Source: Lytechinus pictus
Taxonomy: Eukaryota
Direction of reading: 5' to 3'
DNA length: 64,000 bases
Assembly (NCBI RefSeq): GCF_037042905.1
Contig: NC_087247.1
Span: 59,520,001 to 59,584,000, forward strand
A model generated the notes under the pieces. The model saw only the letters and a program-made list of their open reading frames with translations, had not been told where the DNA came from and did not search any database. The position numbers and the translations under genes are program-made. Shown here piece after piece: positions 9,001 to 43,199 of this stretch. How positions within the stretch are numbered: position 1 is the stretch's first letter; the number at the start of each line of letters is the position of its first letter.

Positions 9001-12000
9001 TACTTGTACATCAACAACAGAAAAAAACCTCTTATGTTATGTTCAATGCCCTTGTGCTTAAACTCATTTGTGACAACTAAATATTTGAAATTTTATTTAA
9101 TCACATTTTTATCCCTAAAATTGATAGCATAAGTCTTTTTATTTCATCGAAACACTTTTCCTTTTAATGTTCATTATCAAGAATGAACTAAGATTGATAA
9201 AGGATACCTTAGAAGTATCCCAAATATTACAACAAACACAATTGGGCAGTATGTGTATATGTTTAACTCTTTCTTCTGATATGTTGTTAATGATTTAGAG
9301 GGTTCTCCATCAAAATATTCTCCCTTCTCCCTTCATCAGAAATTAGTTTTATATAGAAGGAAAAATATCATTAACAATTTACCTTAAAGATGCAAAGGTT
9401 GTTTTGTGGTGTTTTGAACAATCCTTCAATGGCCTGCCTCATTCTCTCTGGATCTCTGAAATAATATTTTCAAAAAAGGTTCAATAAACATACATGTACA
9501 TATATATGTACAATGAGAAAAGAAATGACACAATGAGAAAAGAAATGACAAATTTCAATTTAATTTCTATGGCCTGTGATGATACTCTGATTGGCAATAT
9601 TGTATTAAAAATGCTATGTTTTGTATAATAATTTACAGACTAGGCCTATTACAGATTGTTTTTCTGTATTATTTTAGTAGAGTGCCTCGTTTCACTCATG
9701 ACATATGGGAAATGTATTTTACAGAACATACATTGAGTTCATGAAAGCACAAGCAGCATTAGAGAAACAGTGGACGAAAACTGTAAAACAAAACATATCA
9801 AGGGTTGACAGAGAAGTCGAATAAGATTATAAAGTAATAAATGCAAATGAGAAATAAACTAGATGGATTATTGACTGCACACAGGTGTAATGTATATTGC
9901 ATACTTTATTCTGATATTGTGAAACCATTAAATTAATTTAATCGCATTGTTAAACTGTAGAGTAAATTATAAAATGAACAAGCCATTCCCTGAATCTAAA
10001 GATCATAATCATTCCTATATGCTTGCATATATAAACCAAGTTTGAAGTCAGTCCTTCAAACAGTTCTTGAATTATCACAAAAAGAAGATATATTTCAAGA
10101 TGCATGTTCTCTGTGACCTTTGATCTATGTCCCTCTAAACTAATCAGATCATAGTCACTCCCATATGCATTCAATATCTAAATATGTAGTCAATACATCA
10201 AACTGTTCTTGAGATATCGCGAGAACAAAAACGGGATGGACACCTCCAGCACCACTACGGTGGGCGGAAGCATGATTAAAAAAATTGATAAATCTCATTT
10301 TGGGACTAATTTGGCAATGAATATTTTAGTTCTCAACATTAAAATTGTTTTTCCAAAAGTTTTTTTTTCCAAATTCAGATTCAAATTTTTTTCCACATCT
10401 CATAAAAAGTACAATACAAATTTAAAAAAGGTAAATACATATCAAAGATGCAAATGTATCTATTCAAATGCAAAGGAGGGGGGGTATTTATTTAGTTAGG
10501 GAACAGAAAAAAATCTTAAACAAAAGTAATTTTACCCAGAGAAAAGATTGACAGGGCAGTATTTGCTTGTGTAGTTCCATTGACCTTCTTTCCTCTGAAA
10601 GATAATATATACAAACACACAGAACCTCATATAACAAATCAGTATTTACTCAACCTGTGATAAATGTGAATGACATGCTCTTAATATGTTGATTGTAATG
10701 GGATTTTATTGAAATCTTTGGCAGAAAACTTGTATGAAATAAGTGCAAGAAGCACAACATAACAATTATAATCTTTTATAATAAATCTTGAAATTATTGA
10801 GTTTATTGATCACTTTAATATAAAATAGATTTTCTGAATGTAATAAAAAGGTGTCCTAAGCTCCTCCTAGCTTAAACAAACATATTTCAATAAAAAAAAA
10901 TCACTGACAACTCCCCCCCCCAAAAAAAAAAAAACCCACACCTTTAGTAAAATATTGAAATAAAAAGACATGATAGTATAATTTACTTCCTTAGAATACA
11001 ATAATGACAATTTTTAAGAGATTCATGAATAATCTTAAATTTCAAACCTTTAATATTTGTTGCATGCAGAACAAGCAAACTGGTTGATCTTCAATCTCTG
11101 GAGATGAAATATGGTGGATGGGTATATAACCTAGTTTAGGCTGAAAATCAGAGAAAGTAATGATAACATTTTGTAAACAAACCAATAAAAATCATTAAAT
11201 CAATACAGAACACATTTTTTACATATAAATCACAAATATAGTTACCTTGAAATTTCTTTTACCTTTATATTTACACTGTGGTTGATATGTCCTTAAACTA
11301 ACAGAGATAAAGTTTAATCATTAATCGACAATCATTTAATCAAGATCAGCAGCAGATCTGAAAAAGATGGTCCTGAAAAAAAAATGTTAATATCAGAAAA
11401 GATTTTTTTCATGAGCATTGTAATCATTTTCTGTTCTAATTGCCAAGGGCAAACTTTCATACAATCTAAAAAATCAGATCAACCATATATTGATATTGCT
11501 AAATGTGTACTGTACCTTTAATTCTACAGTAAGAGTTGATGTTCCCTTAAGTCCTTTGTCATCTAAAAAGCAGTAATTTGGTGAGCAGAGAACTGATGTT
11601 TGATTGGGATCTATCATCTGATGGCATCTTTTTAAAGGTCTTTGGCTCTCAAATGCTTTGCTTACTGAATCAACAAAATCTGCACTCACTGGAATGCATT
11701 TCTGTGCAAAAAGTGAGACAAAAGTTTGTAGGATAAATAACAGCTATTCATACAAAAAAGGAGATGAAAATATACATCAAAAACTGTATGTAGAGTTTTG
11801 ACATAAAAACTGCACCCATCCTTGGAAAATTGATTAAAGACATATCTCAGTTATTTGTGATTATCAGCCCTCTCATGTTATGCCTTATATTAATATAAGA
11901 ATCGTGTAAAGTTCAAAGCAGTAATAAGATGTTTCTACAAAGTCATAATTGCCGCATCACAATCAACAAAGTAGGAATGTGAACTTATGTAGCGTCACAT

Positions 12001-14550
12001 ATTGTACTTGAGCAAATTTACAAATGATTCAAGAATAGGCTGAATGGGAACAAAACATAATAATTTACCAGGTACTCCAATGGTGTTAAACAATTTATAA
12101 TTATAAAAGATAATAAATTAGAACTTTGTATGTCGGACTGACAAGGAACACAGAATAGACAAGGGTTCTATTAAACCTTATGAATGTCTTTGATTCACAC
12201 AAGATTTTCACAATTTACCAGAATTTTGGAATAAGAAACTTCTTTATGAACATGGCAGTAGTAGCCAGATTGCATCTTCTTTATGAGCAAGGAGGTACCT
12301 AGATTGTGTCTTGCCCACAAACAGAGTGTTACTAAAGCTCAAAAGTGATTTACAATATCAAAGATTTCAAAATGGAACCTCTGAAATCAGAATGACTGAT
12401 GTGCTTCAATACTTACTGGAATACTGGAATATCTCCCCAAGATAGGCAGGAGGCAGTTTTTGATGTAATTAATTTTTGCCCAACACTCCATTTTTCTAGA
12501 ATTCTGCAGATGTAACAGATTGATTGAAAAAAAATGATGATAAAAATTACAATTCAAAACTATACACATGGGTTTTTTCATATGAACATTCTATGTTGAA
12601 GGATTTCTACTATTGTATTAAATGATTTATACAAATTTAAAGTGGGAATACAGTGCACAAGACAAGAAGATTATCACTACCGGGGGGGGGGGGGGTATAA
12701 TAAAAACTAATATCCACCTTTTATTTTTCAATAAAGTGAAGAAAATTAGAAAAGAGTGATTAAAAATGTACAGTTTTGTATAGAACTGATGACAAAGCAA
12801 TTTTCCTTTAATAATAAAGCTCTCTTCTAGGCATATAGACAAGATTCAACAATGTTGAGACCCTAAAATATCCATTTCATTTACATTCTGATTGTCAATT
12901 TCAAATACTAAAGTTTTCTGCTAATTAAACACGTTTTAAAGCCAGACTAAACAAGAATGCTAGAAGTAATTTTATGACTGGCCGTACTTCATCTTCTTAA
13001 TTGTATATTTATGAAAAAGATATTGTACCAAACATTTGAAATTTACTGAATTTATTCATATTATCCTTTTTCTCAATATTTCTTTTAACAAAATATATTT
13101 TTGTTTGATTCCGCTAGATTGAAATTAATCGAACCTTGATGAATAGCTTGGTTATAGCAATCCAGAAACAAGTGAAAAATTATTTTGTTAAGAGAAATGT
13201 TACTGGTAACTGGTTTGGGTTAGTGTAAACAATGATATGAAAATTCCACCCAAGCGTATGCTCCCACTAAGAAATATTTTATTAGGATATACTACCTTCT
13301 GAAGGACATCTTTGGTGTCTTTCTTCCAAAGCCGATAAACAATGTGCTTCTGTAGAAAGGAATTAAAAGAATAATGTACAAACCACCATTATTGGCAAAG
13401 AACTACATGAAATGTTATACATCTATTTATTAACAATATTTCAACAGGATACCCAATCAACATAAAAATTGCTCTCCCTTGGGGTCCTGTATATTAAAAA
13501 ACAATCACAATATGTCTTATTATACACAGTAAAATTAACATGAGAAAATATACATACATTATGATAGAACATAATAGTTGAAGTAAGATATAAACGAAAC
13601 TATAAATAACTATTAACTACGCACATCATTAGAAAGAAGGGAATATACATACATGTACATAGAACATAATAATCGAAATTGACATCGGAGATATTTACTA
13701 TTGGAAAAAAAAAAGGTATCTACATGATTAAGAGAAACAAAGCACCAGTCTTCACCCTGTTTCCCTGTTTTAGATATTTTGGTAAAAAGGTTTGAGGATT
13801 CTGAAGATCAATTATCAGTGAGTTATTATGACACCAATTAGTCTAATACTCCAAGGTACGTTGGATCAAAGATACTCCAAGGGGAAACTGGACACTTTGG
13901 TGATCGTTTCTACATGGGAAGAGACCAAACAGTGTTTGGTCATGAATCGGCATACGGGTTGTGTAAAAACATAGAGGTGAAATGATAAGAGGCGGATGCA
14001 GGGGTGGTGCAAGGGGATGGTCTCATCTCTCCTTTCATAATAATAATAAAATTATTATTATCTCTCCTTTCACAGATATTGCTATCAAATACTTATTTTC
14101 GAATTTGTTGGCATTAAAAAAAGTAAAATTTCAGAATTGCACATCCCCTCACCCCTCTCTCATTTCGCCCTATACTTTGTAGACAACCCAAAAATTCAAT
14201 ATGCAAATGTTGACCTACCCAAAGCTAATGGGTACTCTTTCAAAGAGTTACATTACATGCCCTATTAAAAGTGTCCAATCTTCCCCTTGATGTACAGGTG
14301 TCTTTGTTTGGACCCAAAAAAATTATCAGCTAAAATACTGCCTGGTTATCAATATATCACTAAAACACTCTATATCTAATAATAATTAACCAATAATTTT
14401 ATTCATACTTATCACAGAGTAACAAGGATATTAAATATGTTCACGCCATCTCACCTTCTTATGTCCAATAACTAATGATGAATTTCCCTCCTTGATATAC
14501 TTCCAGAATTTAACATCCTCAATATCCTCTTCTAGATCATTAGAATCCAT
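3082..14550 (-). CDS. IPPK: Inositol-pentakisphosphate 2-kinase (IP5 2-kinase), 12 coding exons, 474 aa
   Basis: Manually spliced exons, all GT-AG with consistent phases: 14550-14455, 13349-13296, 12503-12417, 11701-11516, 11140-11048, 10594-10536, 9455-9383, 8324-8176, 7491-7358, 7203-7050, 4819-4628, 3229-3082 (1425 nt incl. TAA). IPPK motifs occur in the expected order: WKYIKEGNSSLV, LTVELK|PKLG, CLFCMQQ, SKYCPVNLFSG, PQNNLCIFKDGELIY, TARDCSVLI, LVDLDSK. Confidence 0.93.
3573..4433 (-). mobile_element. Non-autonomous Helentron-associated (HINE/DINE-1-like) element in IPPK intron 11
   Basis: Subterminal inverted pair GTCTCGCCTGCAT (~3596) / ATGCAGGCGATAC (~4415). T-run 5' end and CTTGTTT 3' end on the minus strand. 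GACGAC microsatellite-like stretch near the 5' end. Internal ~165-bp tandem units rich in TGACCTTTGACC/CATGTGACC. Confidence 0.6.
6318..6599 (-). mobile_element. tRNA-derived SINE (family A) with (TTA)n tail
   Basis: Minus-strand head GTGGAGCGTTGTGGTCCAGTGG (A box) ... GGGTTCGAATCCC (B box), central CCAGGTGAGGTAAATGGGTACCGG block and a TTA-repeat tail. Related copy at 31519-31816. Confidence 0.8.
8705..8950 (+). mobile_element. tRNA-derived SINE (family B)
   Basis: A box TGGCTCAGTTGGTAGAGCG, degenerate B box, body AGACCAAAAGAC..AAAAGATGGG.GTTGCTGCTACCCTG. Homologous over its length to 24984-25250. Confidence 0.8.
9856..10285. mobile_element. Degenerate HINE-like repeat
   Basis: AAACTAG start, TGACCTTTGA motif, TTCTTGAGATATCGCG and an A-run end. 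Resembles the 3573-4433 architecture but is decayed. Confidence 0.3.
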
Positions 14551-14622
14551 AGTCCCATCAATTCAACTTTCCAGTGTGTTAGCTTCTTTTAATCATATTG
14601 ATGCTTTGTGTTGCTTACAGAC

Positions 14623-14721
14623 CTATGGAAGAATAGGCAATGAATATTAGATCTAATGCGGATGGTACATTAAAGCAGATACGAACCAATAGCGCCATCT
14701 CGAGTCCTCAACTACTCATAC
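14623..14721 (-). other. Probable 5'-UTR intron of IPPK (99 nt); first exon and promoter probably in the CpG-richer 14722-14960 stretch
   Basis: Minus-strand donor CCAG|GTATGA at 14721. Acceptor TTCCATAG| at 14623, 72 nt upstream of the ATG at 14550. Confidence 0.45.
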
Positions 14722-16534
14722 CTGGCCAGTTTCCTGGCCCATAATGCTAGTGTTGTCTAGTAATATAGACACATAGAGATGTATACTAATAATGCTAGAG
14801 GGCGTACTTCGTCAAATCTCTGTGATTACGCGGAGACCGGCCGCTATTACTCGATAGGTCTTCGCAGCCTGCCATGCGCGTACATTACCTATGGGGCATG
14901 TACAGTGATAGCACAGAAACGGAACAAAATGATGACATATGAGCTTGAAAGCAAATGGAAAAGCAAAATATTGTAAATCGCACTGGATTAAAGTTCAAAT
15001 TAACAAAGAATCTATCAAAACTGAGGACAAAACTGCCTATATAGACCTATAGGCAGTCATAATATATCCTACAAATAATACAGTCCAACGATAATATACA
15101 TCCCCAATCATTTTTGCTTTGGTCATAACATTTCGATGTATCATATATATGACTTCTATTTTCTGATGATTTGGAAGGGATGAATATTAAAAACAACATG
15201 CAGCTAGGCCTATAGGCATATCGTTCTAGGTCCTGTAAATTTAACATGATCTGGTGTTCAAGTTGACCTCAGAAATTTCATAGGCCCTTTCACAGTGTCT
15301 GATGCATCCGAGACACAAGCTATCGAAAAAACACGATTGCATTTTTTTTCAAGTATAGTTTCCTAATTACTATGATGCTGATTGCTGATAATTTATTTCT
15401 TTACTTTTGATAATTTTTATAATTCATTTTCCATTTAGATCTACACATAGAAATCATATAAAGAATATAGAGCCTAACTCCTTTCCCCATGGTTTTAAAC
15501 GTCGATGTAACCAACATCACAATAACTTGTGAGTCATAAAATGACTTTTATTGATAATATTTGAAAATGATTTATGCATTGGTCCAATTAATTGATAAGT
15601 TTATGATTTAAATTTCCAATGCTGTCAACCATCCGGTCATATTGATTACTTATATACGTGCGAGCAATTAAGAAATGTTTGTTGACAGCAAAATTTGCAT
15701 ATCAAATGCGCGCATGCAGTAGTACAATTTTGCAATGTACAGGAGGCCATGGGGTAAAGTGTAGGATGTTTACCGTGTATTATTGACTTGCAAACATTTC
15801 AATATTTCGGAGAGTAAACAAATTACAATGCGTGTTTAACGCAACATAGAACAATTTCACTTTGATTTTCTGGAAAGTCTAAACTTGATTCACTCCGGCT
15901 GAAATACTATGCAGATCGGCAAACCGGCTGAAATATTCTGTTGATATAATTATGGCCGGCGTTTGTGATCCTAATGATTGGACCAATATTATGTGAACAA
16001 ATCAAGGATAGAATAATAAGAAGGAGAGGAATAAGGAGGAGAAGAGAAGAAAAGGGGCGGGAAGACTGAGGATATTTGTATTATACTACAAAGATTATTA
16101 TTACTAAAACTGAGTGTATAAAACCAGTTGATAACAATATCATGAAAGAGATTCATAAATGCAAACTTAATAAACTTATATAAAAACGGTTGCAAAATTG
16201 TGAGTACTAAAACCAAACATAATATTATTGAATATTGCAAAACTGAAAATCCTTGGAATAAGATGTTATACAAATTGTCAGCTGTTGAGTGATCATCATA
16301 ATTACCTGTCTTGAGATTGTGTTAATATTTATTAACTGTGTCTGTGTTAAATTTATGGCAAAGATTTCCAAACACTGGCACCGGCCTATGTCATAAACCG
16401 GTAAACATGCGTTTTGCATATTCAGTTTTGTTTGTCACTTTAAAAGTATAACTAACTTGATCTTCTAATTTTATTCTTTTAATTTCATTGGCTAGCCTAT
16501 GGACCTGAGTTTGATTTTTCAGGTTTGTTTTATA

Positions 16535-22936: not shown

Positions 22937-25900
22937 ATGGGGAACCCTCTTCAGCTCTTCACTATCACAGGCCTGTTTTATCTGCCCTTTTTCCTACTTG
23001 GAGTACTAAGGGGCATTCTTGTTCTTCTGCTGTCCCTGGTCTTCAAAGGACCACGATGGGTGTTTCATCGAAAGACCAGGAACTCACGACCACCTTGCAT
23101 GGAGGACTTGCAGCTTGGCTCCCATAAATTTGTTACTGTGGAGGTAGGACAACTGTAAGGTATTGATGTGCTATTCAATGCAATTCAATACTCACTGTTT
23201 GTACTATTCAATAGAAAAAATACAGCTCTCTCTCTCTCTCTCCTCATCCCTCTGCTTGGTTTGCAGTCTGATTTGCTATACTATGATATTGTACATTCAT
23301 CTGTGTCATTTCCACAATCATGTCTAGTCTTCAAACATATACTCTTTTGACAATGCACATTCATATTGTAGAGATTACAAAACACTACCTTCTTTTTAAT
23401 GGATTGAATCAAAGAAAGCTGAATTAAGTATTCTTCCACTGTTTTAATACCAAATATGCACACCAAGTACCTTCTCCCAGTTCAAAGAAAATATTTTATC
23501 CTTCTAGCAAGCTCTTGCAGTTTTATCCCTCTTCAGTTCTTGACTTTTACTTTTTATTCTGGGTACTCTTGGTACCTTTCTCTTGATTCTTCACTCTTAA
23601 CATGTTTTACAGGGTCAGGCTTTCTGGCTTTTCTTGCCAAGTTATCCTACTCATATATCTATATCTGATCCAAACAGTAGTATGAAAGACCATAAATAAT
23701 TTAATCTTTTAACCTATAAGAAGAAATTTCACCTTCCTACTTGAGAATATGCATTTCAAATTTCATTGCAAGAAATATGTCTCTTACCATTGCTATTTTA
23801 CTTTCTACCTTACAATTCACCTTTTTTATTTGTATTCCTTCTACTTTAGGATGTAAAGCTTCATATTGTAGAGTCGGGTGATCCTAAGAATCCTTTGATG
23901 TTATTTCTACATGGCTTTCCAGAATGCTGGTATTCATGGAGACATCAGATCAGAACATTCAATAAAGATTATCAGTAAGTATGACCTCATTCAAACAAAG
24001 TAACCAAATAAGGAAACATTTCCAAAACATATTTCATTTACATGTATCAAAATAATGCAAATGAAATAAAAGAAATATGGAGAGCCCTTGATAGTAATAC
24101 AATATGTAGTTGCTAAAACCTCATCATGATATGAATAAAACAATACACATTTTAGTCTATCTCTGAAGGCAAGTCCATGCTATTATGACACAACCTCTTA
24201 TTCAACATTCATAACTTTATGACACAACCTCTTATTCAACATTCATAACTTTTGTCTTCCCTTTCATTGATTTATCTTTATGCAGTGTTCTACAACCTCA
24301 TTAAACAATCATAATTTTGTACAAATGTTTGGTTTAAAATAAGTGATGCAGTTAATCTACATTTCTAACATTGTAAGCTTTTCTTATAAAAGCTTTATGA
24401 TGTCTTGTGCAGTCTGCTTCATCCTTACACATTTACTCTTGTTTTTAAAATGCAACTTTTCTTTTAGTTAAGTCATCATCACTCAACTTGGACCATCAAA
24501 ATTATGTGTTAAACAAATAACCTCCTTTGATAAATTCATTAGTCTGTCCAACATTTTTTCAACTGGTTTGCTACTTTAGTTGTGTATCATTTGACATGAG
24601 AGGAACTGGTGAGTCAGATGCCCCACTATCCAAGAAGTTCTACAGTCTAGATAAACTCACTGGTAATTATAATTACTATTCTTAGGTATTAATCTCATTG
24701 TCGGAGTTTTGCGTTTTGGCTATACAGGCAGTCAAGAAAAGGGCAACATATTAAAGATGCTGTGAAGTTCTCACTGAAATTAATAATAAATGAAATAAGA
24801 GACCTACTACTAGAGACTATCCTTAATAGCCAATATTAGCTACAAAATCCCTTTGCCCAAAGAGATAGTATGAAACCCTGTTGGACCAGAGATGATTTCC
24901 CTTGAGTACATGGAGATCTTTAGACTATATTGTACCATTCAGAACTGTTGTTTCAAATTTACAATTGAGCACTAAATTATATACCGGTGTGTTGGCTCCG
25001 TTGGTAGAGCGTCTGTCTCACAACTGGGAGGTCGGGGGTTCAAACCCCGGCCGCGGCAGACCAAAAGATGTTAAAAGATGGGAGTTGCTGCTACCCTGTT
25101 TGGCGTTCAACGATTAAAAGGGATAGAGCCTCGTCGATCTGGTGCTGCACAGCGGCTGCCGGGCCCATGATCAATTGGGCAAAGCAAATTTTTGGAGTAT
25201 TTCATTTCATGTCTATTTCGAACAATAAAATATGGATTTTCATATTCATATGTGGAAGGACCCAGATCATCTTGAACACATATCATTCAATGATTAATTT
25301 TAGATCAGTATTCCTACCACTAAAACATTGGGGGTTTTAGAATATTCTCTAAACCAAGTGACACAAACAATGATCTCAGTATATTTCTAAATACATTCTC
25401 AGACTAAACAAGTATTAGATTTGAGAAGAAATTATAGCTGACAGTTGGTTAAAAGCCAACACATAATGTATTTAACTGATATAATAATATATTCACTTGA
25501 ATAAATCACCTATATTTCTTCCTTTCTTTTCACAGAAGACATTCATAAGCTGATTGGTGTATTGGGTCATGATTCCTGTATCCTGGTAGGGCATGACTGG
25601 GGTGGTATGATCGCCTGGGACTTTGCTACCCGTTACCCAGAACAGCTGAACAAACTAATCATTATAAATGCAGCTCATCCCAATAGATTCAGAGAACTCT
25701 TTCAAAGCTACTACTTACCTCAGCTGTGGCGCTCATGGTAATTTTATACCATATATTCTTTTTCACTTCTTTTCTACTGAAATGTAGGCAAGTGTTTCTG
25801 TATCCTTCACTCATCAAGTTTGAACAGTGAAAGATGAAAAGTTTTGTAGTAAACCAATTGTTATCAGGAATTCTGGGATTCTATGACAATACTCAGAAAT

Positions 25901-27809
25901 CTCCTCAAGCTTGCATGGATTAAACAATGACAGGCACTCTCCTATCTCTCTTTCTTTTGAGCAATTTAATAGCATCAAAATGCTGAGGATGATCCTTTAT
26001 AGTATATGTATAATATAGCTTTAATTCAGCTCTCTTATTTAGCTCCCATGAAAACTTGACTTGCAATTAAAGTTTAAAAATACAAGCAACAAACAAAATA
26101 TATCAGGGAAGGAAATTAACAGGTTTTTGAACATTTTTTTCTTCTTTCAGGTATGTGTTTTTCTTTCAACTGCCATACTTGCCAGAGATGTTGCTGTCAA
26201 TGGGTGATTATATAATACTCCAGAAACATTGCATGAAGGGCCCAACAACTGAGGAAGATATAGAAGCCTTCAAATTTGCTCTTTCAAGACCAGGCAAGAA
26301 ATATTATGTAACTTATTTTTTCCCTTTAACTTATTTGATATATCTACTGGGAAGATATATGAAGAAATTTCTTTTCCATTTTCAAGAGCTCTTCAAAGCC
26401 TGCTTTACATGTGATCAGATTTGACTTCCCGTTCTTCTGTATTTTAAGCCCTACATGTATATCTAAATAATCCACACTGTACTGCACTCAGCTCAGGTGA
26501 GGTAAATTATCATCCAAAGTCTCTTTGGAAGTGCTTATAGATGTATGGTATATATCGTTGATGGTCATCTGAACCGTCGTATCACACATAAGACGGTGCA
26601 AACCCATTTCAGAGAAAATTGACTTCAAAGTTCACTATAATTTTCACACTCAGTTCCCAAGCCTTACATCATATTCATTGCAAGAAAAATACATGGTTGG
26701 AAAGACCAAGACAATTGCTTGACATTGATATCTTTATTTCTATACAAAACCAAGGATCAGAGAAGGTATCGCAAAAGCAAAAGAGATACAATTGTAATTT
26801 TGGTTTGAGTGGTTTAGATTTTTCTTGTACAAAAACGCCATAGGCGATACAACAACCCTGACTGCGATTTAAATGCATGCGGCCAGTCAAAACATATCGC
26901 TTTTTCACGGGCAAAGACAATGCAGTGCCCATACGACGGTTTGGCGGACCGCGCATTTGCATATTGAGTGCGTACAGTTGTTGTTTGCTTTGCTACAGTA
27001 CACGTTTCCAACGGGATTTGCGCATTTTATAAACAATTTTCCTGGCATTGCCATGGAAAACCCCTCATATCTCAGAAACTAAAATAAATTGCTGCCTAGA
27101 AATTTAGTTATGAACAGAATAGCCTGAATAGGACTTGTACATTTCATTTTCTGCAAAAATCTAAAAATCAACTTTTCGACCAAAATTAACTGATATGACG
27201 GTTTGGATAAACGCCGACGATATACACTACAGAAGAACTGAATATCATAGTGTAGTAGGTTTCACGGTACACCATGTATCTTTCTTGGGCAAGTGTTGGT
27301 CCTGAAAGGACCACCCAATCTCGACGTTTCGACAAGTGTGTTCTGAGGATGACAAGAACACACTTGTCGAAACGTCGAGATTGGGTGGTCCTTTTCAGGA
27401 CCAACACTTGCCCAAGAAAGATACATGGTGTACCGTGAAACCTACTACACTATTCTTCTTCGCCATGGAAACCTTCAGAAGTTATAACGGAATATCATCA
27501 TTATATGAATGAGACTGCCCATTTTAATTGTGAAGCCTTGTTTTTTTCACTACAGGGAGAGTGACTACATTTCTAAACTACTACAGGAATGCAGCACATG
27601 AATTTTTCCATGGAACAGGTTATGTCACCACACCTACTCTTCTCATCTGGGCCACGTCACACTATGCTCTTGACAACAAGCTGGTGGATAAAACAGAAAG
27701 ACTTTGTCGTCAATTAATTGTAGAAAGAATAGAAAATGGTGATGTGCTGGTGCACCAGGAACAGCCTGACATTGTCAACAGACTCATCAAAAAATATCTT
27801 GTAGAGTAA
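22937..27809 (+). CDS. Epoxide hydrolase 3/4-like alpha/beta hydrolase, copy 1 (337 aa; altered catalytic triad)
   Basis: Exons 22937-23143, 23850-23974, 24580-24662, 25536-25737, 26151-26293 (GC donor), 27556-27809 = 1014 nt with an open frame. N-terminal hydrophobic anchor, [15 protein letters not shown], DMRGxGES, GHDWGG, SWY and NYYRN are present. C-terminus reads WATSH and ENGDVLVHQ instead of WGTGD and EGGxH. Confidence 0.9.
24984..25250 (+). mobile_element. tRNA-derived SINE (family B), more complete copy
   Basis: A box TGGCTCCGTTGGTAGAGCG, B box GGTTCAAACC. Homologous to 8705-8950. Confidence 0.8.
26551..27224. mobile_element. Older TA-flanked MITE in EPHX copy 1 intron 5
   Basis: Imperfect ~34-bp IR: TATATCGTTGATGGTCATCTGAACCGTCGTATCA versus the reverse complement of the right end, TATATCGTCGGCGTTTATCCAAACCGTCATATCA. 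Confidence 0.5.
27249..27489 (+). mobile_element. Penelope-like element remnant: inverted plus direct pseudo-LTR hairpin with a hammerhead-type core
   Basis: ~98-bp near-perfect inverted arms (27247-27344 / 27355-27453). CTGAGGAT-GACAAG-AACACA-CTTGTC-GAAACGTC core at 27343-27376. Flanking 9-bp direct repeat GAATATCAT (27240-27248 / 27490-27498). Confidence 0.65.
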
Positions 27810-29548: not shown

Positions 29549-32500
29549 ATGAGCATTTTGAAATATAGCTGTGTGAGGACCTTGTACTACCTACCAATGT
29601 ACATCTTGGTCATTCCTGTGGTAATATTCATTGTCCTGAAAGGATTGTTACGTCATGGACCATGCTGGCTGTTTTATAAGAAAGAAAGATTAGAGAGACC
29701 AGCTTGCATGGATGATCCACAGCTTGGAAACCATAAGTTTGTCCAAGTCAAGGCAAGTGTCCATTAAAGTTTTATTAGCTCTATATTTCAAAATTATTAT
29801 CATTATATTTTTTGGGGGGAGGGGCTACTTTTCTTCTGCAACATTGGATATGCTTTAATCTTAACATAGCAGTAAATCAGGATTTTCTGGGACTTTTTTT
29901 ATGTCTGAGGGCTCTTTTGAGCATTTCAGGGGCAAATGGCCCAGAGCCTCCAAGTAATTATTTCCCTGCAAGCAAGATATCGTAACCAGAAGAAACGAGG
30001 GGCAAATCGCCCTGAGCCTCCAAGTAATTATTTCCCTGCAAGGTATCGTAACCACAAGAAATGAAGGGGCAAATCGCCCTGAGCCTCCAAGTAATTATTT
30101 CCCTGCAAGCAAGGTATCGTAACCAGAAGAAATGAAGGGGCAAATCGCCCTGAGCCTCCAAGTAATTATTTCCCTGCAAGCAAGGTATCGTAACCAGAAG
30201 AAATGAAGATGACGGGTGTAGGGGCAAATTTGCTGGTTGTTAGGCCAACTTAAGTATTTCACTTAAATAATCATTCATGACTAGTGTCTTTATCACCGAA
30301 ACAGTTTTAAAGAAAGGTCAGAAAACTTAAAATTCCCTGGTCACAGAAATACAACATTAGCACGTGATTGAATGTTTCCTAGGTCTCAAGTAATCCTGAG
30401 CTACAAATTCTACAAGTTTAAACATTTAACAAAAAACATAAAGACACTGATGCATATGGAGGCTACAAAGTGTCTTTTTGGTGTTTATAATCCTATGTGA
30501 CAGCAATTACTTCACAACTTGTTAGGAGAGCTCTCACTGTTCTGTGTACCCTGCTATGTACCTCTTGACTGAAAATGATACGTCACTATAATTTGCAATT
30601 TCACTTGCATAAAACTTAACTTCATAAGATGACTTGAATACTGGAATACATATGGAGTCTTTAAATTATAGCGTTTATTCCAATAATATTTAATTCTTCT
30701 ACTTTAGGACATAAAGCTTCATATTGTAGAGTCAGGTGATCCTAAGAATCCTTTGATGTTATTTCTACATGGCTTTCCAGAATGCTGGTATTCATGGAGA
30801 CATCAGATCAGAACATTCAATAAAGATTATCAGTAAGTATAACCATGCATGATATAACTGTGCCTGAAACACAATCAGAAAGACAAAAAACTTCTTAGGT
30901 TCACCAAGATATCTGAAAGTCAATCCAAAATCTGATCCAAAGAAATACTCCAAAAATGCCGAACAAATCTGACATATAATTAATAAAATGCTGAAGGCAA
31001 TATGAATTATAAACATTAATTCTTATGAAGGTTAAACATTGCAAACACAATGATATTGACAGCCTTCTTTTTTCTTGAAAATCAATTGAAAAATATCCAG
31101 TATCTACTTTTCTGTGAACAAACAATACAAACCATTGACATGCTTGCAATCTCTACTTAGCTGTGTAGCCATTGATATGAGAGGTGTTGGTGAATCAGAT
31201 GGTCCTCCAGGAAAGATGAACTATACTTGTGACCTTATCACAGGTGAGCTACAACCTTTGTTTCATACATGTATATCATATCCACTTGTTCTGTATCACT
31301 TGTTTGTAATTTTGCGTAATTTTTGACCTATTTTCAAATTTACAGAGGTAACATCCTTAAAAACTCTATTTTATTTGTAGAAAACAATGTTTTTATAAGT
31401 AGAAACAATTTTTTATGATAATAGCCAATTGAAAGAAAATGATCCATCCTCATTCATAAACTTAAATTAGGACCTACTCTTAAAATATTCCCAATCATTA
31501 ATTGATAAACTGAAGAAGATAATAATAATTGGCATTTATATAGCGCTTTATCAATCTACGACTGTTCAAAGCGCTTCACAATTATTATTACCCGGTCACT
31601 GGATTCATAGCATTTCAAGCAGCCTGTTAGGCGCACACTTGCTAAACCAACCACAATGACGGTTGTTTCCTACCGGAACCCAATTAGCACCTGGGTGAGA
31701 GTGGCAAAGTGTGGATTGACGCCTTGCCAAAGGGCGCTAGGCCATGGTGGGATTCGAACACACGACCCTCTGATTACAAGACGAGAGTCAGAACCGCTAC
31801 ACCACGGTGATTCCACAAGATCCATTCTAAGTATGAATATACCTCTAATACCCTCTTCACACTGGTTTTAAAATTTATCCTGGTGCTGTTGAGGGAGGGC
31901 GGCACCGCTATAAACCCGCTATAAATGCATTCAGAGTAGAAAAGTTATCCAGGCACAGTCCTGAGATAAATTTCATGTATCCGTTCACACTGCAGCAGGT
32001 GATTTTTTATGACCTTGGTAACAAAACACGTGTAGGCTTGTGACCCAGTGAGTGACCTGACTTTGATACACCGGAAATATTTGAGGGTGGGGAATGGAAC
32101 CCACGTCCTTCATATTGAAAGACGAGAGTCATGACCACTAAACCACGATGCCCCCACATTATAGTAAAGATATCACAAGTGGTTTATCCCGGAGTTGTAG
32201 CGGTGTGCCTTCACACTGAATGAACACCGCGACAGTCGCAGGGCTGTCCCCGCTGCTATTACTATGGCTTGCGAATAGCGATAGTTTGTTGCAGAGTTAT
32301 AGGGAGGCGAGGTTATCCCGGGGTAGTTTATTGCAGGTCCGAGAATTCACACTGAAGGCAACACTGCTACAGTCTCAGGACAGTCTCGGTACTGAAGCTG
32401 TGATTGAGGCCGTGTGAAGACTGTATACTATAAAAGAGCAAATTGTCCTTGTAACTTCTGAAGGTTTCATGGTGAAGAAGAAGAGTGTATTGACTTTACG

Positions 32501-35338
32501 GTACACCATGTATCTTTTGTGGATATATATATAGGCCACGAAAGATACACCACTACAATTAGTTCATGAGTTAACATTTTTGTGAAAACAGATAATTATC
32601 CTTTTATTTCTCAAATACAGGAGATGTGTGTGAACTGATCCATGTTCTAGGACATGAGACATGTATCTTGATAGGACATGACTGGGGTGGATTGATAGGA
32701 TGGAAGTTTGCTGCACAGTATCCTGAAATGGTGGATAAATATATAGCAATGAATATACCACACCCTGATAGATTCAATGAGCTTGTATCATTATACTTGC
32801 CACAAATAATCAAGTCATGGTGAGCAACAGCTAAGACAATTAAAATTCTATATGCAATAGGTAGCTCCCCCCATCTTAGCCTAAAATTCAATTAAGTAAT
32901 CTAGTACCAAGGTAATTATAATGAAGATGATAATGATGACAATCTTTTAAAGATAAAACAGCCATCCAAAATCAATTTAGGCTTTGGTGTAATGTATGTG
33001 CTTTAATGTGGTCACTGTCAAATGTTCAACTAGAGAAGCATTATTCCCGACCTTTCGTTGGAGAACGCGAACGTTTATTTACGACAGTAGTTGATTTTGG
33101 AAGAGACTTTTGGGCCTGTCGTCATGGTCGTAAAACTCTGTCCTGCAATGCAAATTGTGTGACATGAGATTTTTTTTTGTTTCGCATCTGCAACGGAAAC
33201 ATTCAATATGCGTTTCGTGTGCAAAATTCTGGTTGCTACTATGGTAACAGCGATATATCCGATTTAGGACGACTTTCCAGAGCCACATTTTGTTCCTCCC
33301 AGAGCTCGAGAGGCCGCCCGGGGGGCCCACTTCCATTGACGAGTGGATACCAGGCGCGACCACGCGTAAAAGGGGACAGAGTGGGCAAGTAGGTTACGTA
33401 TATAGGCCTTTGTAATGTTATAAGGGTGTCAAAAACGATGTTTAAAATACTGAAAAAAGTGATATATTTCCAATACTTGTAGGGTTTCACAAGCCAAATA
33501 CTTAAGAGATGCATTTTCATAATCTGGAAAAGCCTTGCTTCCCTTGTTTAGGGTGCTTTTTGAAACCGCATGGTCGTGCCTGGTATCCACTCATCAATGG
33601 AAGTGGTCCCCCCGGGAATTTGAATCTAATCCCCCATTTCTGGGGAAAGTAGAACATGATGCACATTACATTGTGTGCTAGAGGCATATCGTTTGTGTAG
33701 AAGGAGTAAACAAAAGAAAAAAAAACGCAATTTCGGCTGGTATTCAGACGTATACATGCTGTGTAGATATCAACGCATGCAAAATGGTTTCTGCTGGAGA
33801 GGTCATCTGACCCATGGAATCAATTGCCAGTGATCCACCAATAATCCACATTAAATACAATATTGATTCGATGGACTGTAATGATCTATATCTAAGCCTT
33901 AATTCAGTAAGTTTTTCCTCACTCAATATGTACTCGATTTGTTTGAAAAACCACTTTCTTATCCATGTCATAATCTATTGTGGGCCCTGCATTTCGATAT
34001 CTCCAGCCAGCTGTCATAGCTAGTAGAGGTTCGCCGCCGGCTCAAGGGGCATATACGATGATGACCAGACGTACACATGCATGAAAACGGGTGTCGCGTG
34101 AAAGAAATTTGCACACGAATAGCAGATCTACAAAGCAATGAATGTAGAACAGATTTGTACGATTGATTCTATTGATTATAATGTACAATTACTCGTTAAA
34201 ATCGAATGTACGATTAATCGTTGATTTTTTGTGTTAGGGGACCCTAATCTTACCGTCCATGAGGTTTGCGAGAGGTGGCTATTTCCATTCTGAAGAGGTA
34301 CAATAATATAGCCAATGATCCATATGAAATACTGTAGTGATACTTTTCACTAGGCCTATAAATAATTGATCCACCGTATAATGGATAAATCTTTTCTGTT
34401 TGAAACTGTTTGACAGGTACATATTTTTCTTCCAAATGCCATGGTTCCCTGAAAGGGGAGTACAGATGGGAGATTACAACATGATCAATGAAGAATGTAA
34501 ACATGGCGAAACTACTGATGAAGATATTGAAGCATTCAAGTATTCTATATCAAGACCAGGTAATCACATTTTTCCTGGGTGACTTGGTATTGTAAAGTCA
34601 GAATGAGCAGTTTAGATATTATGTGCGAGTGATTCGGTGGTGTGGGTTTGTTTGGTGGTGTGCAGTATCTATATGAGTAAATTGACACAATAGACATCAA
34701 ATTGGACTGATATTCCACATATCATTGATTAACAAATAACAAGTATCTAGTTACTTTCTAGCAGACTGATTAAATCCTGATCATATCAATTATTAATTTA
34801 TTAGAGTCAAGAAATTCAAAGAACAAAGAAAGCAAAACAAAAACTAGAAAAGCCATATTCTTTAATTTCCCTTAAAAATAAAATATGACAAATAGAAAAT
34901 GAAGATTGCATTTTTTTAAATGAAAATTCAACATAGTTTTCATTTGAAAAATTCACCTATGGTAGAAGACGTACTGCTGTACCAAAGAAACTTATAAATA
35001 AACTTTTTAAAAGTCTATACTACAGCTGAACTGTACATGATTGATACTGATCTGATTTTCTTATAGATCGTCTGCATACCTTCATGAACTACTACCGTAA
35101 TGAACTTACTCTGATCTTCACCAAAACTGGAGTGGTTAAGACACCAACTCTGCTCATTTGGGGGACAGGAGATGATTACCTTCACACCCGTCTTTCTTAT
35201 GACACTGAGAAATTCTGCCCAAATCTGAAGGTGGAGCGTATAGAGGGCGGCAATCACTTCATCCAACAGGAGCAGCCGGATCTTGTCAATCAGCTGATGA
35301 AAAAATATTTGGAGAAAGAAATTACTCTTGAAATATGA
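29549..35338 (+). CDS. Epoxide hydrolase 3/4-like alpha/beta hydrolase, copy 2 (341 aa)
   Basis: Exons 29549-29752 (GC donor; an in-frame upstream ATG at 29510 is possible), 30708-30832, 31161-31243, 32621-32819, 34417-34559, 35067-35338 = 1026 nt. HGFP, GHDWGG, NYYRN, WGTGD and EGGNH are all intact. Confidence 0.9.
29929..30227. repeat. Minisatellite, ~70-bp unit, about 4 copies, in EPHX copy 2 intron 1
   Basis: Unit GGGGCAAATCGCCCTGAGCCTCCAAGTAATTATTTCCCTGCAAGCAAGGTATCGTAACCAGAAGAAATGAA, starting at about 29929, 29999, 30066 and 30137. Confidence 0.95.
31519..31816 (-). mobile_element. tRNA-derived SINE (family A relative)
   Basis: Minus-strand A box GTGGTGTAGCGG, B box GTTCGAATCCC, CCAGGTG..AATTGGGTTCCGGTAGGAA core, TTA tail. 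Similar to 6318-6599. Confidence 0.75.
32452..32550 (-). mobile_element. Short diverged second copy of the Penelope-like 3' end
   Basis: Reverse complement ATACATGGTGTACCGT...TTCTTCTTCACCATGAAACCTTCAGAAGTTA matches 27421-27484. Confidence 0.6.
33317..33616. mobile_element. 300-bp MITE with CCCGGG termini
   Basis: ~46-bp IR CCCGGGGGGCCCACTTCCATTGACGAGTGGATACCAGGCGCGACCA / TGGTCGTGCCTGGTATCCACTCATCAATGGAAGTGGTCCCCCCGGG. No clear TSD. Confidence 0.75.
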
Positions 35339-37779: not shown

Positions 37780-40700
37780 ATGAGTCTAAGGACTCTCCTG
37801 AGCTATCCCATCATCAGATATATCCTGTTGCTTCCATTGTTCATCTTAACAACGCTAATTGGTATCTTATTTCTCCTTGGTGCGCTGATCTTCAAGGGAC
37901 CATCATGGGTATTCAGGAAGAAGAAAACTGGCTATGTTAGACCAGAGTGCCTTGATGAACCAAGTCTTGGTACTCACAAAGTCATCTCTCTTAAGGTAAA
38001 ACAAGTATATTTTGCTTATATTAAGACCCATAGTTATGCAGATTATGATGATAGATAGGTTTGTCAGTTTCATAATAACGGTAAGGTTTAAAAATGGTCA
38101 ACACTATATTTTGGATAAACTATGCTCTTTATGTTGTATCAAGTGAGTGATGATAGTGGTAGAATTCTGTAATTCCTGATTGGAAACATTTTATACAGAA
38201 CACATTATTTTCTTTGAATGAGCCTGGATAATTCACTCTTGTAACACGTTGAATTCAGATTACATGATTGTTAGCCAAGAAAAAAGAATGAGATAGATAT
38301 TATTATGGCAGCATAGATATTCTTGAATTATCAAATCATTATCATTTCATCTATGTATACATGACCAAAATTCAGGGGAAAATACTGCAAGTTGGTTTGA
38401 GTGATTTTATGATTGAGACAACAGTACCACCCTTTAGAATGATGGCATATCCTTTTTAAACATCTTGGCCCGTATTCTGAAGTCAGGTTTAACTTAGACT
38501 CAGGTTTAAAGTTGTGTTTTAAGTATGGGAAGCCAAAAGTATCAAATTTTTTATTAAGTTGTACGTTTCTTATGTTTACTGTGCTCTTTCCTGATTCATC
38601 GATGGTGAAGACAATAATCTATATACACTTCCTAGACAATTATGAATGATTTGAGAGCCAAATGAGCTAAAATATGATATCTCTACCGTTAGTGATTTAT
38701 GTAACAATTGGCTGTCCATACTTAAACCACAACTTTAAACCTGAGTTTAAGTAAAACCCGACTTCAGAATACGGGCCCATATGTACATGTATGAAGTATG
38801 GTTCTGAACAAATCCCTTACAATGTACAAGTAAACATGTATGGTATTGTAAGCCATTCAGGCTTTCAGATGTTTAAAACCAGTTACCATGGGGATGAATG
38901 GTTGTAATGTCATGCTTCTTTGATATATTGCTTTAAAGGGTTGCTGCCCAGATATTATGTTAGCCTTCACCTTCCTACATCAACACTATGCTTCACGTCA
39001 CAAATAATTAATTTGGGTATCTAATTTACAAATTAAAGTGGATGCAAAGTCATGAAAAATCAGATCTTTTATACTCCCAGCAGCTTAATTAAGTTTCATG
39101 GTTGTGCAGTCCATTCTAGTTTCCTAATAATCATTTGATGTTAATAGGTATATGTATATCCCTGAACATAGAACATCCAATCAGAGCATTTGATAAAGGG
39201 GGTAAAGGTCATCCTGACAATTTGCTCCATTCAGTAAAAGCTGAAAAATATTGAGAAATGATAATTAAGGCTTGATGAAAATCCATCAAAGAATAAGACA
39301 GTCGAGTCTTTTAATTTTGATTTTGTTCTGTCATATTTAAGCAGCTATCCCATAAGTAATATAATTCTATAAATTCACATTTTTATTGATTCATGAATTC
39401 TTAAATGTCTCTATCCCAGAAACCTCTGAAATGATGTATCTGATGATACAAATTGAATGCACAGGTAATATAATTTCTTATTTTTTATATCACATGCAGA
39501 TTTTCACCAAACCTACATCTATGATTTCTTTTGCTTTTTTTCAAAACAAATTTGTTATCAGGGTGAACCAACTCTTCAATAATTTTTTTTTTTTATTCGT
39601 ATTCCTTCTACTTTAGGACATAAAGCTTCATATTGTAGAGTCAGGTGATCCTAAGAATCCTTTGATGTTATTTCTACATGGCTTTCCAGAATGCTGGTAT
39701 TCATGGAGACATCAGATCAGAACATTCAATAAAGATTATCAGTAAGTATATCCTCATTATCAAAATGCCTAGGTATTGACAACGTGGTAATGCCCTTCAA
39801 TGAAAAAAATAAAAATGAACCAAACTATTTCTGTATGTATACTTATATTAATGGAACTAACTCCCCTAAACTTCTTTGAAAATTTCTGCAGTCTCAATGA
39901 ACCTTTATTACTTTAAACCTGAACATTGCATATGTGGAACATTAGGGCTACATATCATGCAAATACAAAGCGATGATAAGCTGATTAATAATTCTGATAC
40001 TGTATTCATGTATTGTAATAGAACACAATGGACCAATGTGAAATGCAAATAAATATCTTAATTTTCTAATAGAAAATATAACAACTTTGCCTGGGCTTTG
40101 TTTTTTTTTACTTTACAGCTGTGTTGCATTTGATATGAGAGGAGTTGGTGAGAGCGATGGCCCAGATGGAGTGTCTAATTACACCATGGATAAACTTGTT
40201 GGTACGAAGCACACACAAAAAGTGAAACAGAAATTATGTAACCAACTGTCAAACTATGCGAATATTACTGTAGAAGCTGTTATTTTTGGCAAGGGTTTTA
40301 TTTTCACGGATAAACAGCCGCGAACTCAACAATGTGCAAAAATATTGACAAACTTAGTTATCAGTGCCAATGTCCCCAACAGCAAAGCTTTGCTATTGAA
40401 AACATGATGTGTCAGTGTTTCCACAGGTCAAAAAGAAATTTCCGAAACTGAATCCCAAAGTTCCCTAAATTCATCTCCTGCATCTTTCAAGTTTGATATT
40501 TAACAAAATTCAGACAAAATACAGGGAGCCTAAAATTGGTCCAAGAGACCAAACTCAAAGAATTTAGCCTTTTTTGTTCGCACCCTTTCAAAACATATGA
40601 ACAAAATTACGAAATCTGAGTCCGCGCAGAAAATTTTGAGCTACTTATGAGGCAAACAATTCTTTAAATATAACATGAATATTGAAAGTTGCTAAATTTA

Positions 40701-43199
40701 ATTGTTGATTAACTACGATTTTCAGATTTCCCGAAATTTCTTCATTTCCTGAAGATTACCTGAAAATGATCAAAAGAATTCTGGAAATTTCCTTCAAAGT
40801 AGAAACACTGTGCTGTGTAATGAAAAAGTTGAAATATCCACCTATATTTAAAAAATAAGGTTGAAAATACAGTTAGTAATTCAAAACTTGCTAGAATTTC
40901 ACTAACAAAATCAGAGCCTAAATTACTTCCTGGCATATTTTCATCCACTTACTGTAATATTACAATGTATTTTGCATGAACTACATGTAATTTCATTTCA
41001 TTGTCATCTGATTGACTCTATGTACACAGGTACATTGGCAGCTATTTGCATACTTATTAATATTCATAAGTCACATGACCAGAGGTTTTAGAGGTGTAAG
41101 ATTCTGTTCACAAAATTCTACATTTTTTATGCCAATGCAATCCAACCAACAAACATGTACACTTTATAAGCATCTGAAAGAAATATTAATGTACATGTAA
41201 ACAAAAACCACCAATTAGAATCTTTAGTCAACTTGATATAATTTTTTTTTCTTTGAAGGTGACGTACATGACATGATCAAAACATTAGGACACAAGTCAT
41301 GTGTTTTAGTAGGACATGACTGGGGTGGTTTAATAGGATGGGAGTTTGCAGCTCGGTATCCAGATATGGTGGATAATTACATCCCAATGAATGTACCTCA
41401 TCCAGATAGATTTGCTGATTTCATCACCAGCTCTGTTGTCCAGATAATGTTGTCATGGTAAGATCAGGAGTTTTCCTCTTCAAGATTAAATAATTATTTT
41501 TGAGGAGATAGCAAACTAAAATTGAAAATCGTCATTTGGAAAAAGATCACTGTCTTTAGACTTTATTTTATGATCTTCTTCCAATTCTATTCAAGGGAAA
41601 GTAATTCTACAAATTAGAAGGCTTTAGTAATGATCAGCACTCATAGTTGCTCCCAAATTTATAATGTAATACTACACTAAATATTCTATGTTCCTGATAC
41701 ATACATGTAAGTGTTTCATGTACATGTATCTATATAGTACTTATCTAGTCTTAAAAGAATTTTACAGGAAAGGTCATTTTAAGTTATTCCTATTTGAAAA
41801 AAAAAATTATGAGATTTAAATTGTTAAAATACAAATCTCCAATATTTACTTTCAACCTTTTTTAATTTGTGCTTTTTATAAAATATTTTTCCTCATGGAA
41901 CATAACTATGTAGTTTCAATTTGTTCACATAAATGTGGAAATTTTGGATCACTAGAAAATAAAAAACAATTTCAAATTTTGCGAAGAGAGCACACAAAAA
42001 CACTTCCAACAGATATCAATTGAAATAAAATCATTATATCATATATATTATCTCTAAAACAAAAACACTTAATATTTCTTGGACAATTTCCTGCACTTTT
42101 TGTCTTTCTTTTGATTGAAAAACTTTGAAAACAATATACCGGTATATATATATATATATATGTATATATCCTACGAAAGGGCGAAGTCTATGAATGGGTT
42201 TATTCTGTCATAATACATATTTAGACGTAAAGACGAAGGTAGAGGGCGTTAAGGCGCATTACGAACATTGAAAGAAGACAAAAAAATTCGCCTTAAACAC
42301 AGATGTAAAGAAATATATATATATATATATTTATATATATTTATATATGTCATGAATTTATGTTTACCTAAGTTGTTGTTTACCTAAGTTGTAGTTTATC
42401 AATGATATTACAATTTTTTTAAATATTCTATCCCACCCTAGGTACATGCTGTTTTTCCAGTTGCCTTATCTACCAGAAATCCTAATGTCCATGGGGGACT
42501 ATGGCATGCTGAAAGAAGCATATAAGATTGGTCCAAATACAGACGAAGATGCTGAAGCCTTTAAGTATTCCATCTCTATGCCAGGTAATATCAATTCTGA
42601 TTGATTTGGGTTCATAATTTCATATCTATAAAAATTTCAAATCTCAGCGATAGAATTGCATTGACTTAAGTGGCTATACCGTCTGATTCTGGAGTGACAG
42701 TCGCTGGGAGTCTGAAAATACAAGATAATTTCAAATTGAATTTGGTTGATTAGAGATGTCATCCCCATGTACTCAACATGACTGTATGCAATGTGGAATA
42801 TAATTACCACTTATAAATAAGAAGTCACTTTCTTAGATTTAGTTCCTACGTAGACCTATGAAACTGATTATCTTGCCATGAATATCTGATTATGTTCAAT
42901 ACTTACAAATTTTGTAGACCTATATCTTGTTTTTCTTTAAAGGTCGGTCAACCACCTTTGTCAACTACTATCGGAACATCATCGGGGCTATCTTTAACCA
43001 GCCATGTGGGAAAGTTTCTGTGCCAACTTTGTTGATTTGGGGAACAGGAGATGCAGCATTTAATATCAAGCTTTCACATGACACTGAGAAGTACTGTCCC
43101 AAGATCATTGTTAAGAGGATAGAAGGTGGTCATCATAGCATTCAACAAGAACAACCAGATGTAGTTAATAATTTCTTGAAACAATACTTGAATAATTGA
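37780..43199 (+). CDS. Epoxide hydrolase 3/4-like alpha/beta hydrolase, copy 3 (340 aa)
   Basis: Exons 37780-37995, 39617-39741, 40119-40201, 41259-41457, 42442-42584, 42943-43199 = 1023 nt, with the same intron phases as copies 1 and 2. HGFP, GHDWGG, NYYRN, WGTGD and EGGHH are intact. Confidence 0.9.
38467..38777. mobile_element. MITE with GGCCC ends (Harbinger-like)
   Basis: ~50-bp IR GGCCCGTATTCTGAAGTC..GTTT.ACTT..ACTCAGGTTTAAAGTTGTG, mirrored at 38728-38777. Confidence 0.8.

Follow-up and report, generated by a model that had tools for sequence, protein, structure and literature searches.

Epoxide hydrolases of the alpha/beta fold work in two steps, in which an aspartate attacks the substrate to give an alkyl-enzyme ester and this ester is then hydrolysed by water activated by a His-Asp pair (PMC6315908, PMC5340866). 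The nucleophile of the sm-x-nu-x-sm-sm elbow is Asp in all described epoxide hydrolases (PMC5340866), and the role of the HGXP motif has been described for StEH1 (PMC6315908). The consequences of losing the general-base His are known from engineered proteins: the H300A, H300N and H300Q variants of StEH1 are nearly inactive (PMC6315908), while the H272F substitution in DhaA, the first HaloTag variant, permanently traps the alkyl-enzyme ester, with Asn later preferred at position 272 because it hydrogen-bonds the orphaned acid (PMC3520037). Here a natural gene with a comparable loss is described from the sea urchin Lytechinus pictus. It is the first, c1, of three tandem six-exon EPHX3/4-like genes (c1, c2 and c3) on the forward strand of a 64,000 nucleotide stretch of the genome with a G+C content of 35% (assembly GCF_037042905.1, contig NC_087247.1, positions 59,520,001 to 59,584,000; henceforth 'the window', to which coordinates refer). 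The original prediction, made from the letters of the window, held that the last exon of c1 (27556-27809) encodes an apparent exchange of the catalytic Asp and His, leaving either a covalent trap or a rewired triad, and the HaloTag principle to which it appealed is documented for a His to Phe change (PMC3520037).

Among described systems, c1 can be compared with the membrane-anchored mammalian enzymes EPHX3 (EH3/ABHD9) and EPHX4 (EH4/ABHD7). It is 38-42% identical to vertebrate EPHX3/4, falls into the same length class, has an N-terminal anchor helix, and shares with them HGFPE, GHDWGG, SWY, NYYRN and a (Q/H)QxQPD tail. However, EPHX3/4 keep the His (in SHW) and the acid Asp (in WGExD), in place of which c1 has Val and His. 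Furthermore, c1 belongs to an echinoid-specific expansion, and is not a one-to-one orthologue of either mammalian gene. A full-text literature search found no description of the c1 gene or of a natural epoxide hydrolase paralogue lacking the His.

Replacement of the charge-relay residues

Alignments with 57 canonical relatives, with an epoxide hydrolase of solved structure (5ng7) and with homologues from bacteria and animals assign the residues of c1 to their columns, and an ungapped comparison of c1 to c3 agrees with them. The reference motifs in c2 and c3 are LIWGTGD (at 35153 and 43032) and RIEGGNHFIQQE / RIEGGHHSIQQE (at 35237 and 43116); these two proteins and a further L. pictus paralogue, 'epoxide hydrolase 3-like' P0143, retain both GTGD and the catalytic His, whereas c1 does not. 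Translation and the alignments alike bear out the predicted change of the charge-relay motif to LIWATSH, the corresponding general-base site of c1 reading NGDVLVHQE. His289, which follows strand beta7, occupies the column of the charge-relay acid (Asp in 55 of the 57 relatives and Glu in the other two), and Val317, in the loop after beta8, occupies that of the general base (His in all 57), as had been proposed. In addition, Ala286 takes the place of an invariant Gly (57/57), and His320 that of a Gln present in 53 of the 57 (93%). The clade to which c1 belongs departs from its relatives at only seven of the columns conserved to a level of at least 80%, four of which are Gly286, Asp289, His317 and Gln320. 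When 231 family members of 250-400 amino acids were compared, His and an acid (Asp or Glu) were present in all 226 outside this clade, and only entries within it lacked either.

The original prediction also pointed to a new Asp beside the old His position and a new His three residues further on. Both are present, as Asp316 and His320, but neither is peculiar to c1: a fourth type of echinoid paralogue, to which P0143 belongs, reads GGDHF with a normal His, and a His at the +3 position is also found in 13 canonical members. Hence, although both relay residues have indeed been replaced, the idea of a clean Asp/His swap is weakened, since a canonical type also has Asp316 and the c1 clade fills position 317 only with hydrophobic residues (Val, Met or Phe). 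Loss of the base accompanied by compensation would appear to fit these patterns better.

Persistence, selection and expression

Orthologues of c1 are present in Lytechinus variegatus (XP_041458417, P0022; 94% identical), where the protein surfaced in an alignment-based search dominated by cyanobacterial homologues, and in Strongylocentrotus purpuratus (XP_011661314, P0140; 78% identical). The pattern of substitutions is kept in both, the S. purpuratus protein reading WSTAH and KGDMLVHQ, and both have the same six exons, with a frame that is open in all three species; the stop codons that simple decay might have left are not seen in these two orthologues. The order of genes is also shared by the three species, with an inositol-pentakisphosphate 2-kinase gene upstream on the opposite strand, then c1, then the c2 orthologue downstream. 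Positions 10754-14769 of the window line up collinearly with the L. variegatus segment in which this kinase gene lies (minus strand).

The ratio of non-synonymous to synonymous substitution rates (dN/dS) was calculated by the method of Nei and Gojobori, with p values from a test against neutrality. For c1 it is 0.25 between L. pictus and L. variegatus (19 non-synonymous and 21 synonymous differences; p = 3e-5) and 0.18 between L. pictus and S. purpuratus (dS 0.66; p ~6e-20), or 0.17 in the latter comparison for the last exon alone. These values, 0.18-0.25 as opposed to the ratio near one that the original prediction had associated with decay, compare with 0.13 and 0.10-0.11 in the same two species pairs for c2, the catalytically normal control (the second figure from exons 2-6 only, as exon 1 of S. 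purpuratus lacks an exact match between assembly versions). Protein identity between L. pictus and S. purpuratus is 85% for c2, 78% for c1 and 73% for c3. Between the two Lytechinus species the exons are 93-98.5% identical, against 85-91% in the surrounding non-coding DNA.

Transcription and correct splicing of c1 are evident from RNA data. Contigs from the L. pictus runs X1 (depth 18) and X15 (depth 53) are spliced across each of the five introns where predicted, with zero depth in unique c1 intron sequence in X1; among the joints, 23143/23850 is one example, and 23974/24580 and 24662/25536 are found in the X1 and X15 contigs as well as in single reads of X20. The last of these, a stranded raw RNA sequencing (RNA-seq) run, yielded a few reads from c1 exons and two over intron 5, and another raw run, X19, yielded none from c1. 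As c1 is expressed and spliced, has dN/dS values of this order and has intact orthologues bearing the same substitutions, it is a maintained variant under purifying selection and not a product of decay.

Intron 5 of c1 is of the GC-AG type (donor GCAAGA, 26294-26295). The suggestion that this is a splice defect was rejected, because the same donor is found in L. variegatus and S. purpuratus and spliced contigs cross the intron. Intron 1 of c2 likewise has a GC donor at 29753-29754 (AG/GCAAG, as in c1 intron 5), which is kept in L. variegatus. Repeats within the introns of c1, at 24864-25379, 26584-26755 and 27272-27615 (intron 5), reach RNA and contig depths of hundreds to thousands, with many variant letters; the element at 27300-27400 in intron 5 is a near-perfect hairpin whose reads show 'opposite strands' joints. 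An Rfam scan of 22000-44000, these repeats included, returned nothing at the gathering score.

In a maximum-likelihood tree the echinoid-specific expansion (support 100/100) contains a clade of c1, c2 and c3 and another termed 'c4', with one protein from Diadema among its members. The c1 clade (100/98) comprises the proteins of L. pictus, L. variegatus and S. purpuratus and a fourth sequence, P0001, and its stem branch is no longer than that of c2 (0.29 and 0.31). P0001, which was obtained from a representative search with the 83 amino acid exon 6 (20 matches, mostly fragments), is an 86 amino acid open frame on a metagenome contig in ENA that starts at the exon 6 boundary and contains WGTDHYAL and GGDFLLHQSQPD (GGDFLLHQ). 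The other strand of this contig (ERZ26222911, 10.6 kb) bears a 490 amino acid open reading frame with a match to the bacterial-type Pfam family Porin_10; the contig may be a chimeric assembly, or the Porin_10 frame may be unrelated. At position 317 the four members of the clade have Val, Met or Phe, the last in P0001, and Gly286 is changed to Ala or Ser in the three sea urchin orthologues and kept in P0001. None of the four departs from His289, Asp316 or His320, a weak signal given that 40 of the 83 exon columns are invariant anyway. The clade is still recovered (98/96) once columns 286, 289, 316, 317 and 320 are dropped. The replacement therefore arose once, before the P0001 lineage split from the camarodont genes, and well before the divergence of Lytechinus and Strongylocentrotus tens of millions of years ago.

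Only two other last exons of the family were found in the L. pictus genome, and c1 is the sole copy lacking GTGD and the catalytic His. The two exons, L004 (G000:C5:56174290-56174538, minus strand) and L005 (G000:C3:26246223-26246471, plus strand), lie on different contigs, encode identical protein of canonical type (GTGD, GGDHF) and match P0143; they may represent a recent duplicate or assembly redundancy. A scan of JGI metagenomes for exons of the c1 type gave 60 pattern matches, none of which was a relative, and a homologue search with exon 6 alone, which relies on shared 5-mers and similar length, returned none. Elsewhere among echinoderms, a long-branched pair of EPHX4-like crinoid proteins comprises P0156 of Antedon mediterranea, which reads GHGWG with the nucleophilic Asp changed to Gly, and P0151 of Anneissia japonica, with Glu at the acid site. 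In this pair, catalysis may have been lost independently, in a second class of echinoderms.

Retained machinery and the possible mechanism of c1

The reading frame of c1 is uninterrupted over 337 codons in six exons on the forward strand, and the nucleophile, HGFP and both Tyr motifs remain, as the original prediction had it. Exon 1 (22937-23143) begins with the ATG and encodes the N-terminal membrane-anchor helix and a linker (residues 1-69). Exon 2 (23850-23974) contains the HGFP oxyanion-hole motif, of the HGXP type (23910-23921, with His90 at 23910), and the Glu that follows it (Glu94; HGFPE at 23910-23924); exon 3 (24580-24662) contains DMRGTGESD, and exon 4 (25536-25737) GHDWGG, with His158 and the nucleophile Asp159 (25595-25597) both kept. 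Exon 5 (26151-26293) encodes cap-domain sequence, carries the first ring-opening Tyr, Tyr207 of SWY (26152-26154), and is followed by the GC donor. The last exon occupies exactly 27556-27809, with an AG acceptor directly before it and the TAA stop at its end (27807-27809), and its translation includes FLNYYRN and closes with LVE; along it lie Tyr262 and Tyr263 (27579-27584, Tyr263 of NYY being at 27582-27584), Ala286 (27651-27653), His289 (27660-27662), Asp316 (27741-27743), Val317 (27744-27746) and His320 (27753-27755).

Across the 231 family members, the Asp159 column is Asp in 229, the Tyr207 column Tyr in 227 and the Tyr263 column Tyr in all 231; from the alignment, together with general knowledge of EH3 and soluble epoxide hydrolase (sEH), these two tyrosines are presumed to be the ring-opening pair of the cap. 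Codons have turned over synonymously between species at Asp159 (GAC, GAT and GAC in L. pictus, L. variegatus and S. purpuratus respectively), His158, Tyr207 and Asp316. The cap is the best-conserved part of c1, its identity being 86%, as compared with 81% for c2 and 67% for c3. At the DNA level, exon 2 is 97.6% identical between c1 and c2 and 100% identical between c2 and c3, as against only 60-70% for exons 3-5. The three copies of this HGFP module (23850-23974, 30708-30832 and 39617-39741) are embedded in an identical tract that reaches approximately 10-25 nucleotides into the flanking introns. Furthermore, exon 2 of L. pictus c1 is closer to exon 2 of L. variegatus c2 (98.3%) than to that of its own orthologue (96.0%), a sign that gene conversion has taken place repeatedly.

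The predicted fold is that of the family. Pfam Abhydrolase_1 matches c1 at 101 bits (cut-off 25.8), and an AlphaFold2 model of the RefSeq protein P0243, built with a 60-sequence alignment, has a mean predicted local distance difference test score of 94.1, rising to 96-97 in the blocks that contain the two altered loops; its elements include the N-terminal helix (4-37), beta7 (281-286), beta8 (307-312) and a short helix (319-322). The top 50 Foldseek matches in the PDB were all epoxide hydrolases or mutants thereof, with template modelling (TM) scores by target of up to 0.90, and the best were the solved bacterial and metagenomic enzymes CH65 (8agn/5ng7; TM 0.90 by target) and Bacillus megaterium epoxide hydrolase (4nzz), together with the C-terminal domain of human sEH. 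Sequence matching to this group gave 34% identity with an E value of 1e-51. Unlike c1, these three enzymes have an Asp-His-Asp triad, are soluble and have no N-terminal anchor. Its fold, nucleophile, HGXP motif, Tyr pair and anchor place c1 in the EPHX3/4-like lineage; as it lacks, on the evidence of the alignments, both the His and the acid that help to define an epoxide hydrolase, its annotation as an active enzyme is not warranted.

The synonymous turnover at first-step residues, the near-identity of exon 2 and the conservation of the cap suggest that c1 still depends on binding its ligand and probably on being alkylated. The reading favoured here, which is given about an even chance of being correct, is that c1 is a hydrolysis-deficient trap or tight binder of epoxides. 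The water-activating half of the site was replaced in an ancestor predating the split of Lytechinus and Strongylocentrotus, and all parts required for substrate binding and the first step (Asp159, His158, HGFP-Glu94, both tyrosines and the cap) are kept. The protein should then still bind substrates of the epoxy-lipid type and would probably be alkylated by them, yet release of the diol by the canonical route would be blocked for want of the His-Asp relay, such that c1 would turn over very slowly or just once, and would serve as a sink, a sensor or a covalent or tight binder. The hydrophobic residue at 317 would fill the position of the base, the unpaired buried acid would have been neutralised by the change to His289, and the main part played by His289 and His320 would be to compensate for the lost buried pair by neutralising and packing the site. 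The comparison with the HaloTag and StEH1 variants supports trapping by analogy, as all combine a retained Asp nucleophile with a non-basic residue in place of the general-base His, and P0001 has the same change to Phe as the first HaloTag variant. However, those variants were engineered, whereas c1 is natural and under purifying selection, and c1 differs further from HaloTag in the changes of the acid Asp to His, of Gln320 to His and, in the three sea urchin orthologues, of Gly286.

Several points weigh against this interpretation. Both the alkylation of c1 and its loss of hydrolysis are inferred from its residues, and the invariance of His289, Asp316 and His320, weak signal though it is, is compatible with a new catalytic role too. 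Service as a stoichiometric covalent sink would come at a high cost, and c1 is expressed genuinely but at a low level in both raw RNA-seq samples. In StEH1, the equivalents of Glu94 and His158 help to place the hydrolytic water (PMC6315908); by analogy, their retention in c1 might support slow hydrolysis.

Among the alternatives, a rewired multi-turnover hydrolase, in which His289 of the beta7 loop or His320 in the first turn of the C-terminal helix, perhaps with Asp316, activates water, and which at its extreme would have a permuted acid/base pair, seems rather unlikely. It would account for the fixity of those three residues in four clade members while position 317 varies between Val, Met and Phe, for the strong constraint on the first-step residues and cap, and for a dN/dS near that of the active paralogues. 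Yet about half of the exon 6 columns are invariant anyway, and the presence of Asp316 in canonical GGDHF paralogues and of a +3 His in 13 canonical enzymes argues that neither is a new catalytic invention. Moreover, residue 317 is always hydrophobic, and the Phe of P0001 would fill the site just as in HaloTag H272F. By the general geometry of alpha/beta hydrolases, the acid site should lie behind the canonical His, and a His in that place would not reach the ester without a shift of the loop or a bridging water. A broader proposal, doubtful but slightly less so, is that the c1 clade represents a new arrangement of one of two kinds: a permuted triad, in which the beta7-loop His (with His320 and Asp316) would take over water activation from the universal beta8-loop His, or a natural suicide receptor, a HaloTag of biological origin, that signals through, or sequesters by, permanent alkylation with an endogenous epoxy-lipid.

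Less probable again is a pseudoenzyme that neither turns over nor is alkylated, but serves in lipid binding, as a scaffold or as a regulatory subunit, for example with paralogues anchored in the endoplasmic reticulum. The loss of both relay residues from a protein that selection has maintained, with the cap its most conserved part, is compatible with such a function, and epoxide-hydrolase-fold proteins of low or no activity have been discussed as possible pseudoenzymes, the nearest case in the literature searched being Cfl2, a low-activity Cif-like protein which keeps its catalytic residues (PMC8244358). A pure binder, however, would have no need of Asp159, His158, HGFP-Glu94 and both tyrosines, which are kept in c1 through synonymous codon turnover, nor does it explain an exon 2 nearly identical to that of active paralogues; the nucleophile can be lost in this family, as in Antedon P0156, yet c1 retains it. 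That c1 is a young unprocessed pseudogene whose frame is still open by chance is highly improbable. This explanation would be in keeping with the loss of the two most critical relay residues, the non-canonical donor of intron 5 and the somewhat faster evolution of c1 than of c2, but it is refuted by the dN/dS of 0.18 at a dS of 0.66, the open frame, substitutions and GC donor common to three species, the spliced transcripts and the greater conservation of exons than of non-coding DNA.

Neighbouring genes and significance

The three genes were located by a motif scan and a listing of open frames, followed by refinement of splice sites. They share exon structure and phases, and c1 is 54-58% identical to c2, c3 and P0143. 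The c1 model matches RefSeq XP_054750417.2 (P0243, 'epoxide hydrolase 4-like [Lytechinus pictus]') at 100%. Downstream, c2 (29549-35338, plus strand) has six exons encoding 341 amino acids, is catalytically canonical (LIWGTGD, GGNHFIQQE), has the GC donor in its intron 1 and falls within XP_054749779.2 (P0249). The third gene, c3 (37780-43199, plus strand), encodes 340 amino acids in six exons, is also canonical (LIWGTGD, GGHHSIQQE) and is identical to P0144, an L. pictus 'epoxide hydrolase 1-like' protein. In S. purpuratus, the c1 and c2 orthologues are fused in an older model, P0248 (XP_796482.4, 683 amino acids), through either transcriptional read-through or an artefact of annotation.

To our knowledge, alpha/beta hydrolases are taken to follow the order nucleophile-acid-His without exception, and variants with an Asp nucleophile but no His are known only from engineering, HaloTag and mechanistic mutants being examples of such traps. 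In c1, such a variant has been kept in nature by purifying selection since before the split of Lytechinus and Strongylocentrotus. In practice, hydrolase activity is not to be presumed for the three entries that RefSeq calls 'epoxide hydrolase 4-like'. L. pictus is being developed into a sea urchin amenable to genetics, which brings knock-outs and knock-ins within reach, and c2 and c3 stand beside c1 as built-in normal controls. The gene thereby opens to test both whether covalent capture has a physiological role in epoxy-lipid biology and whether the fold would tolerate a relocated base.

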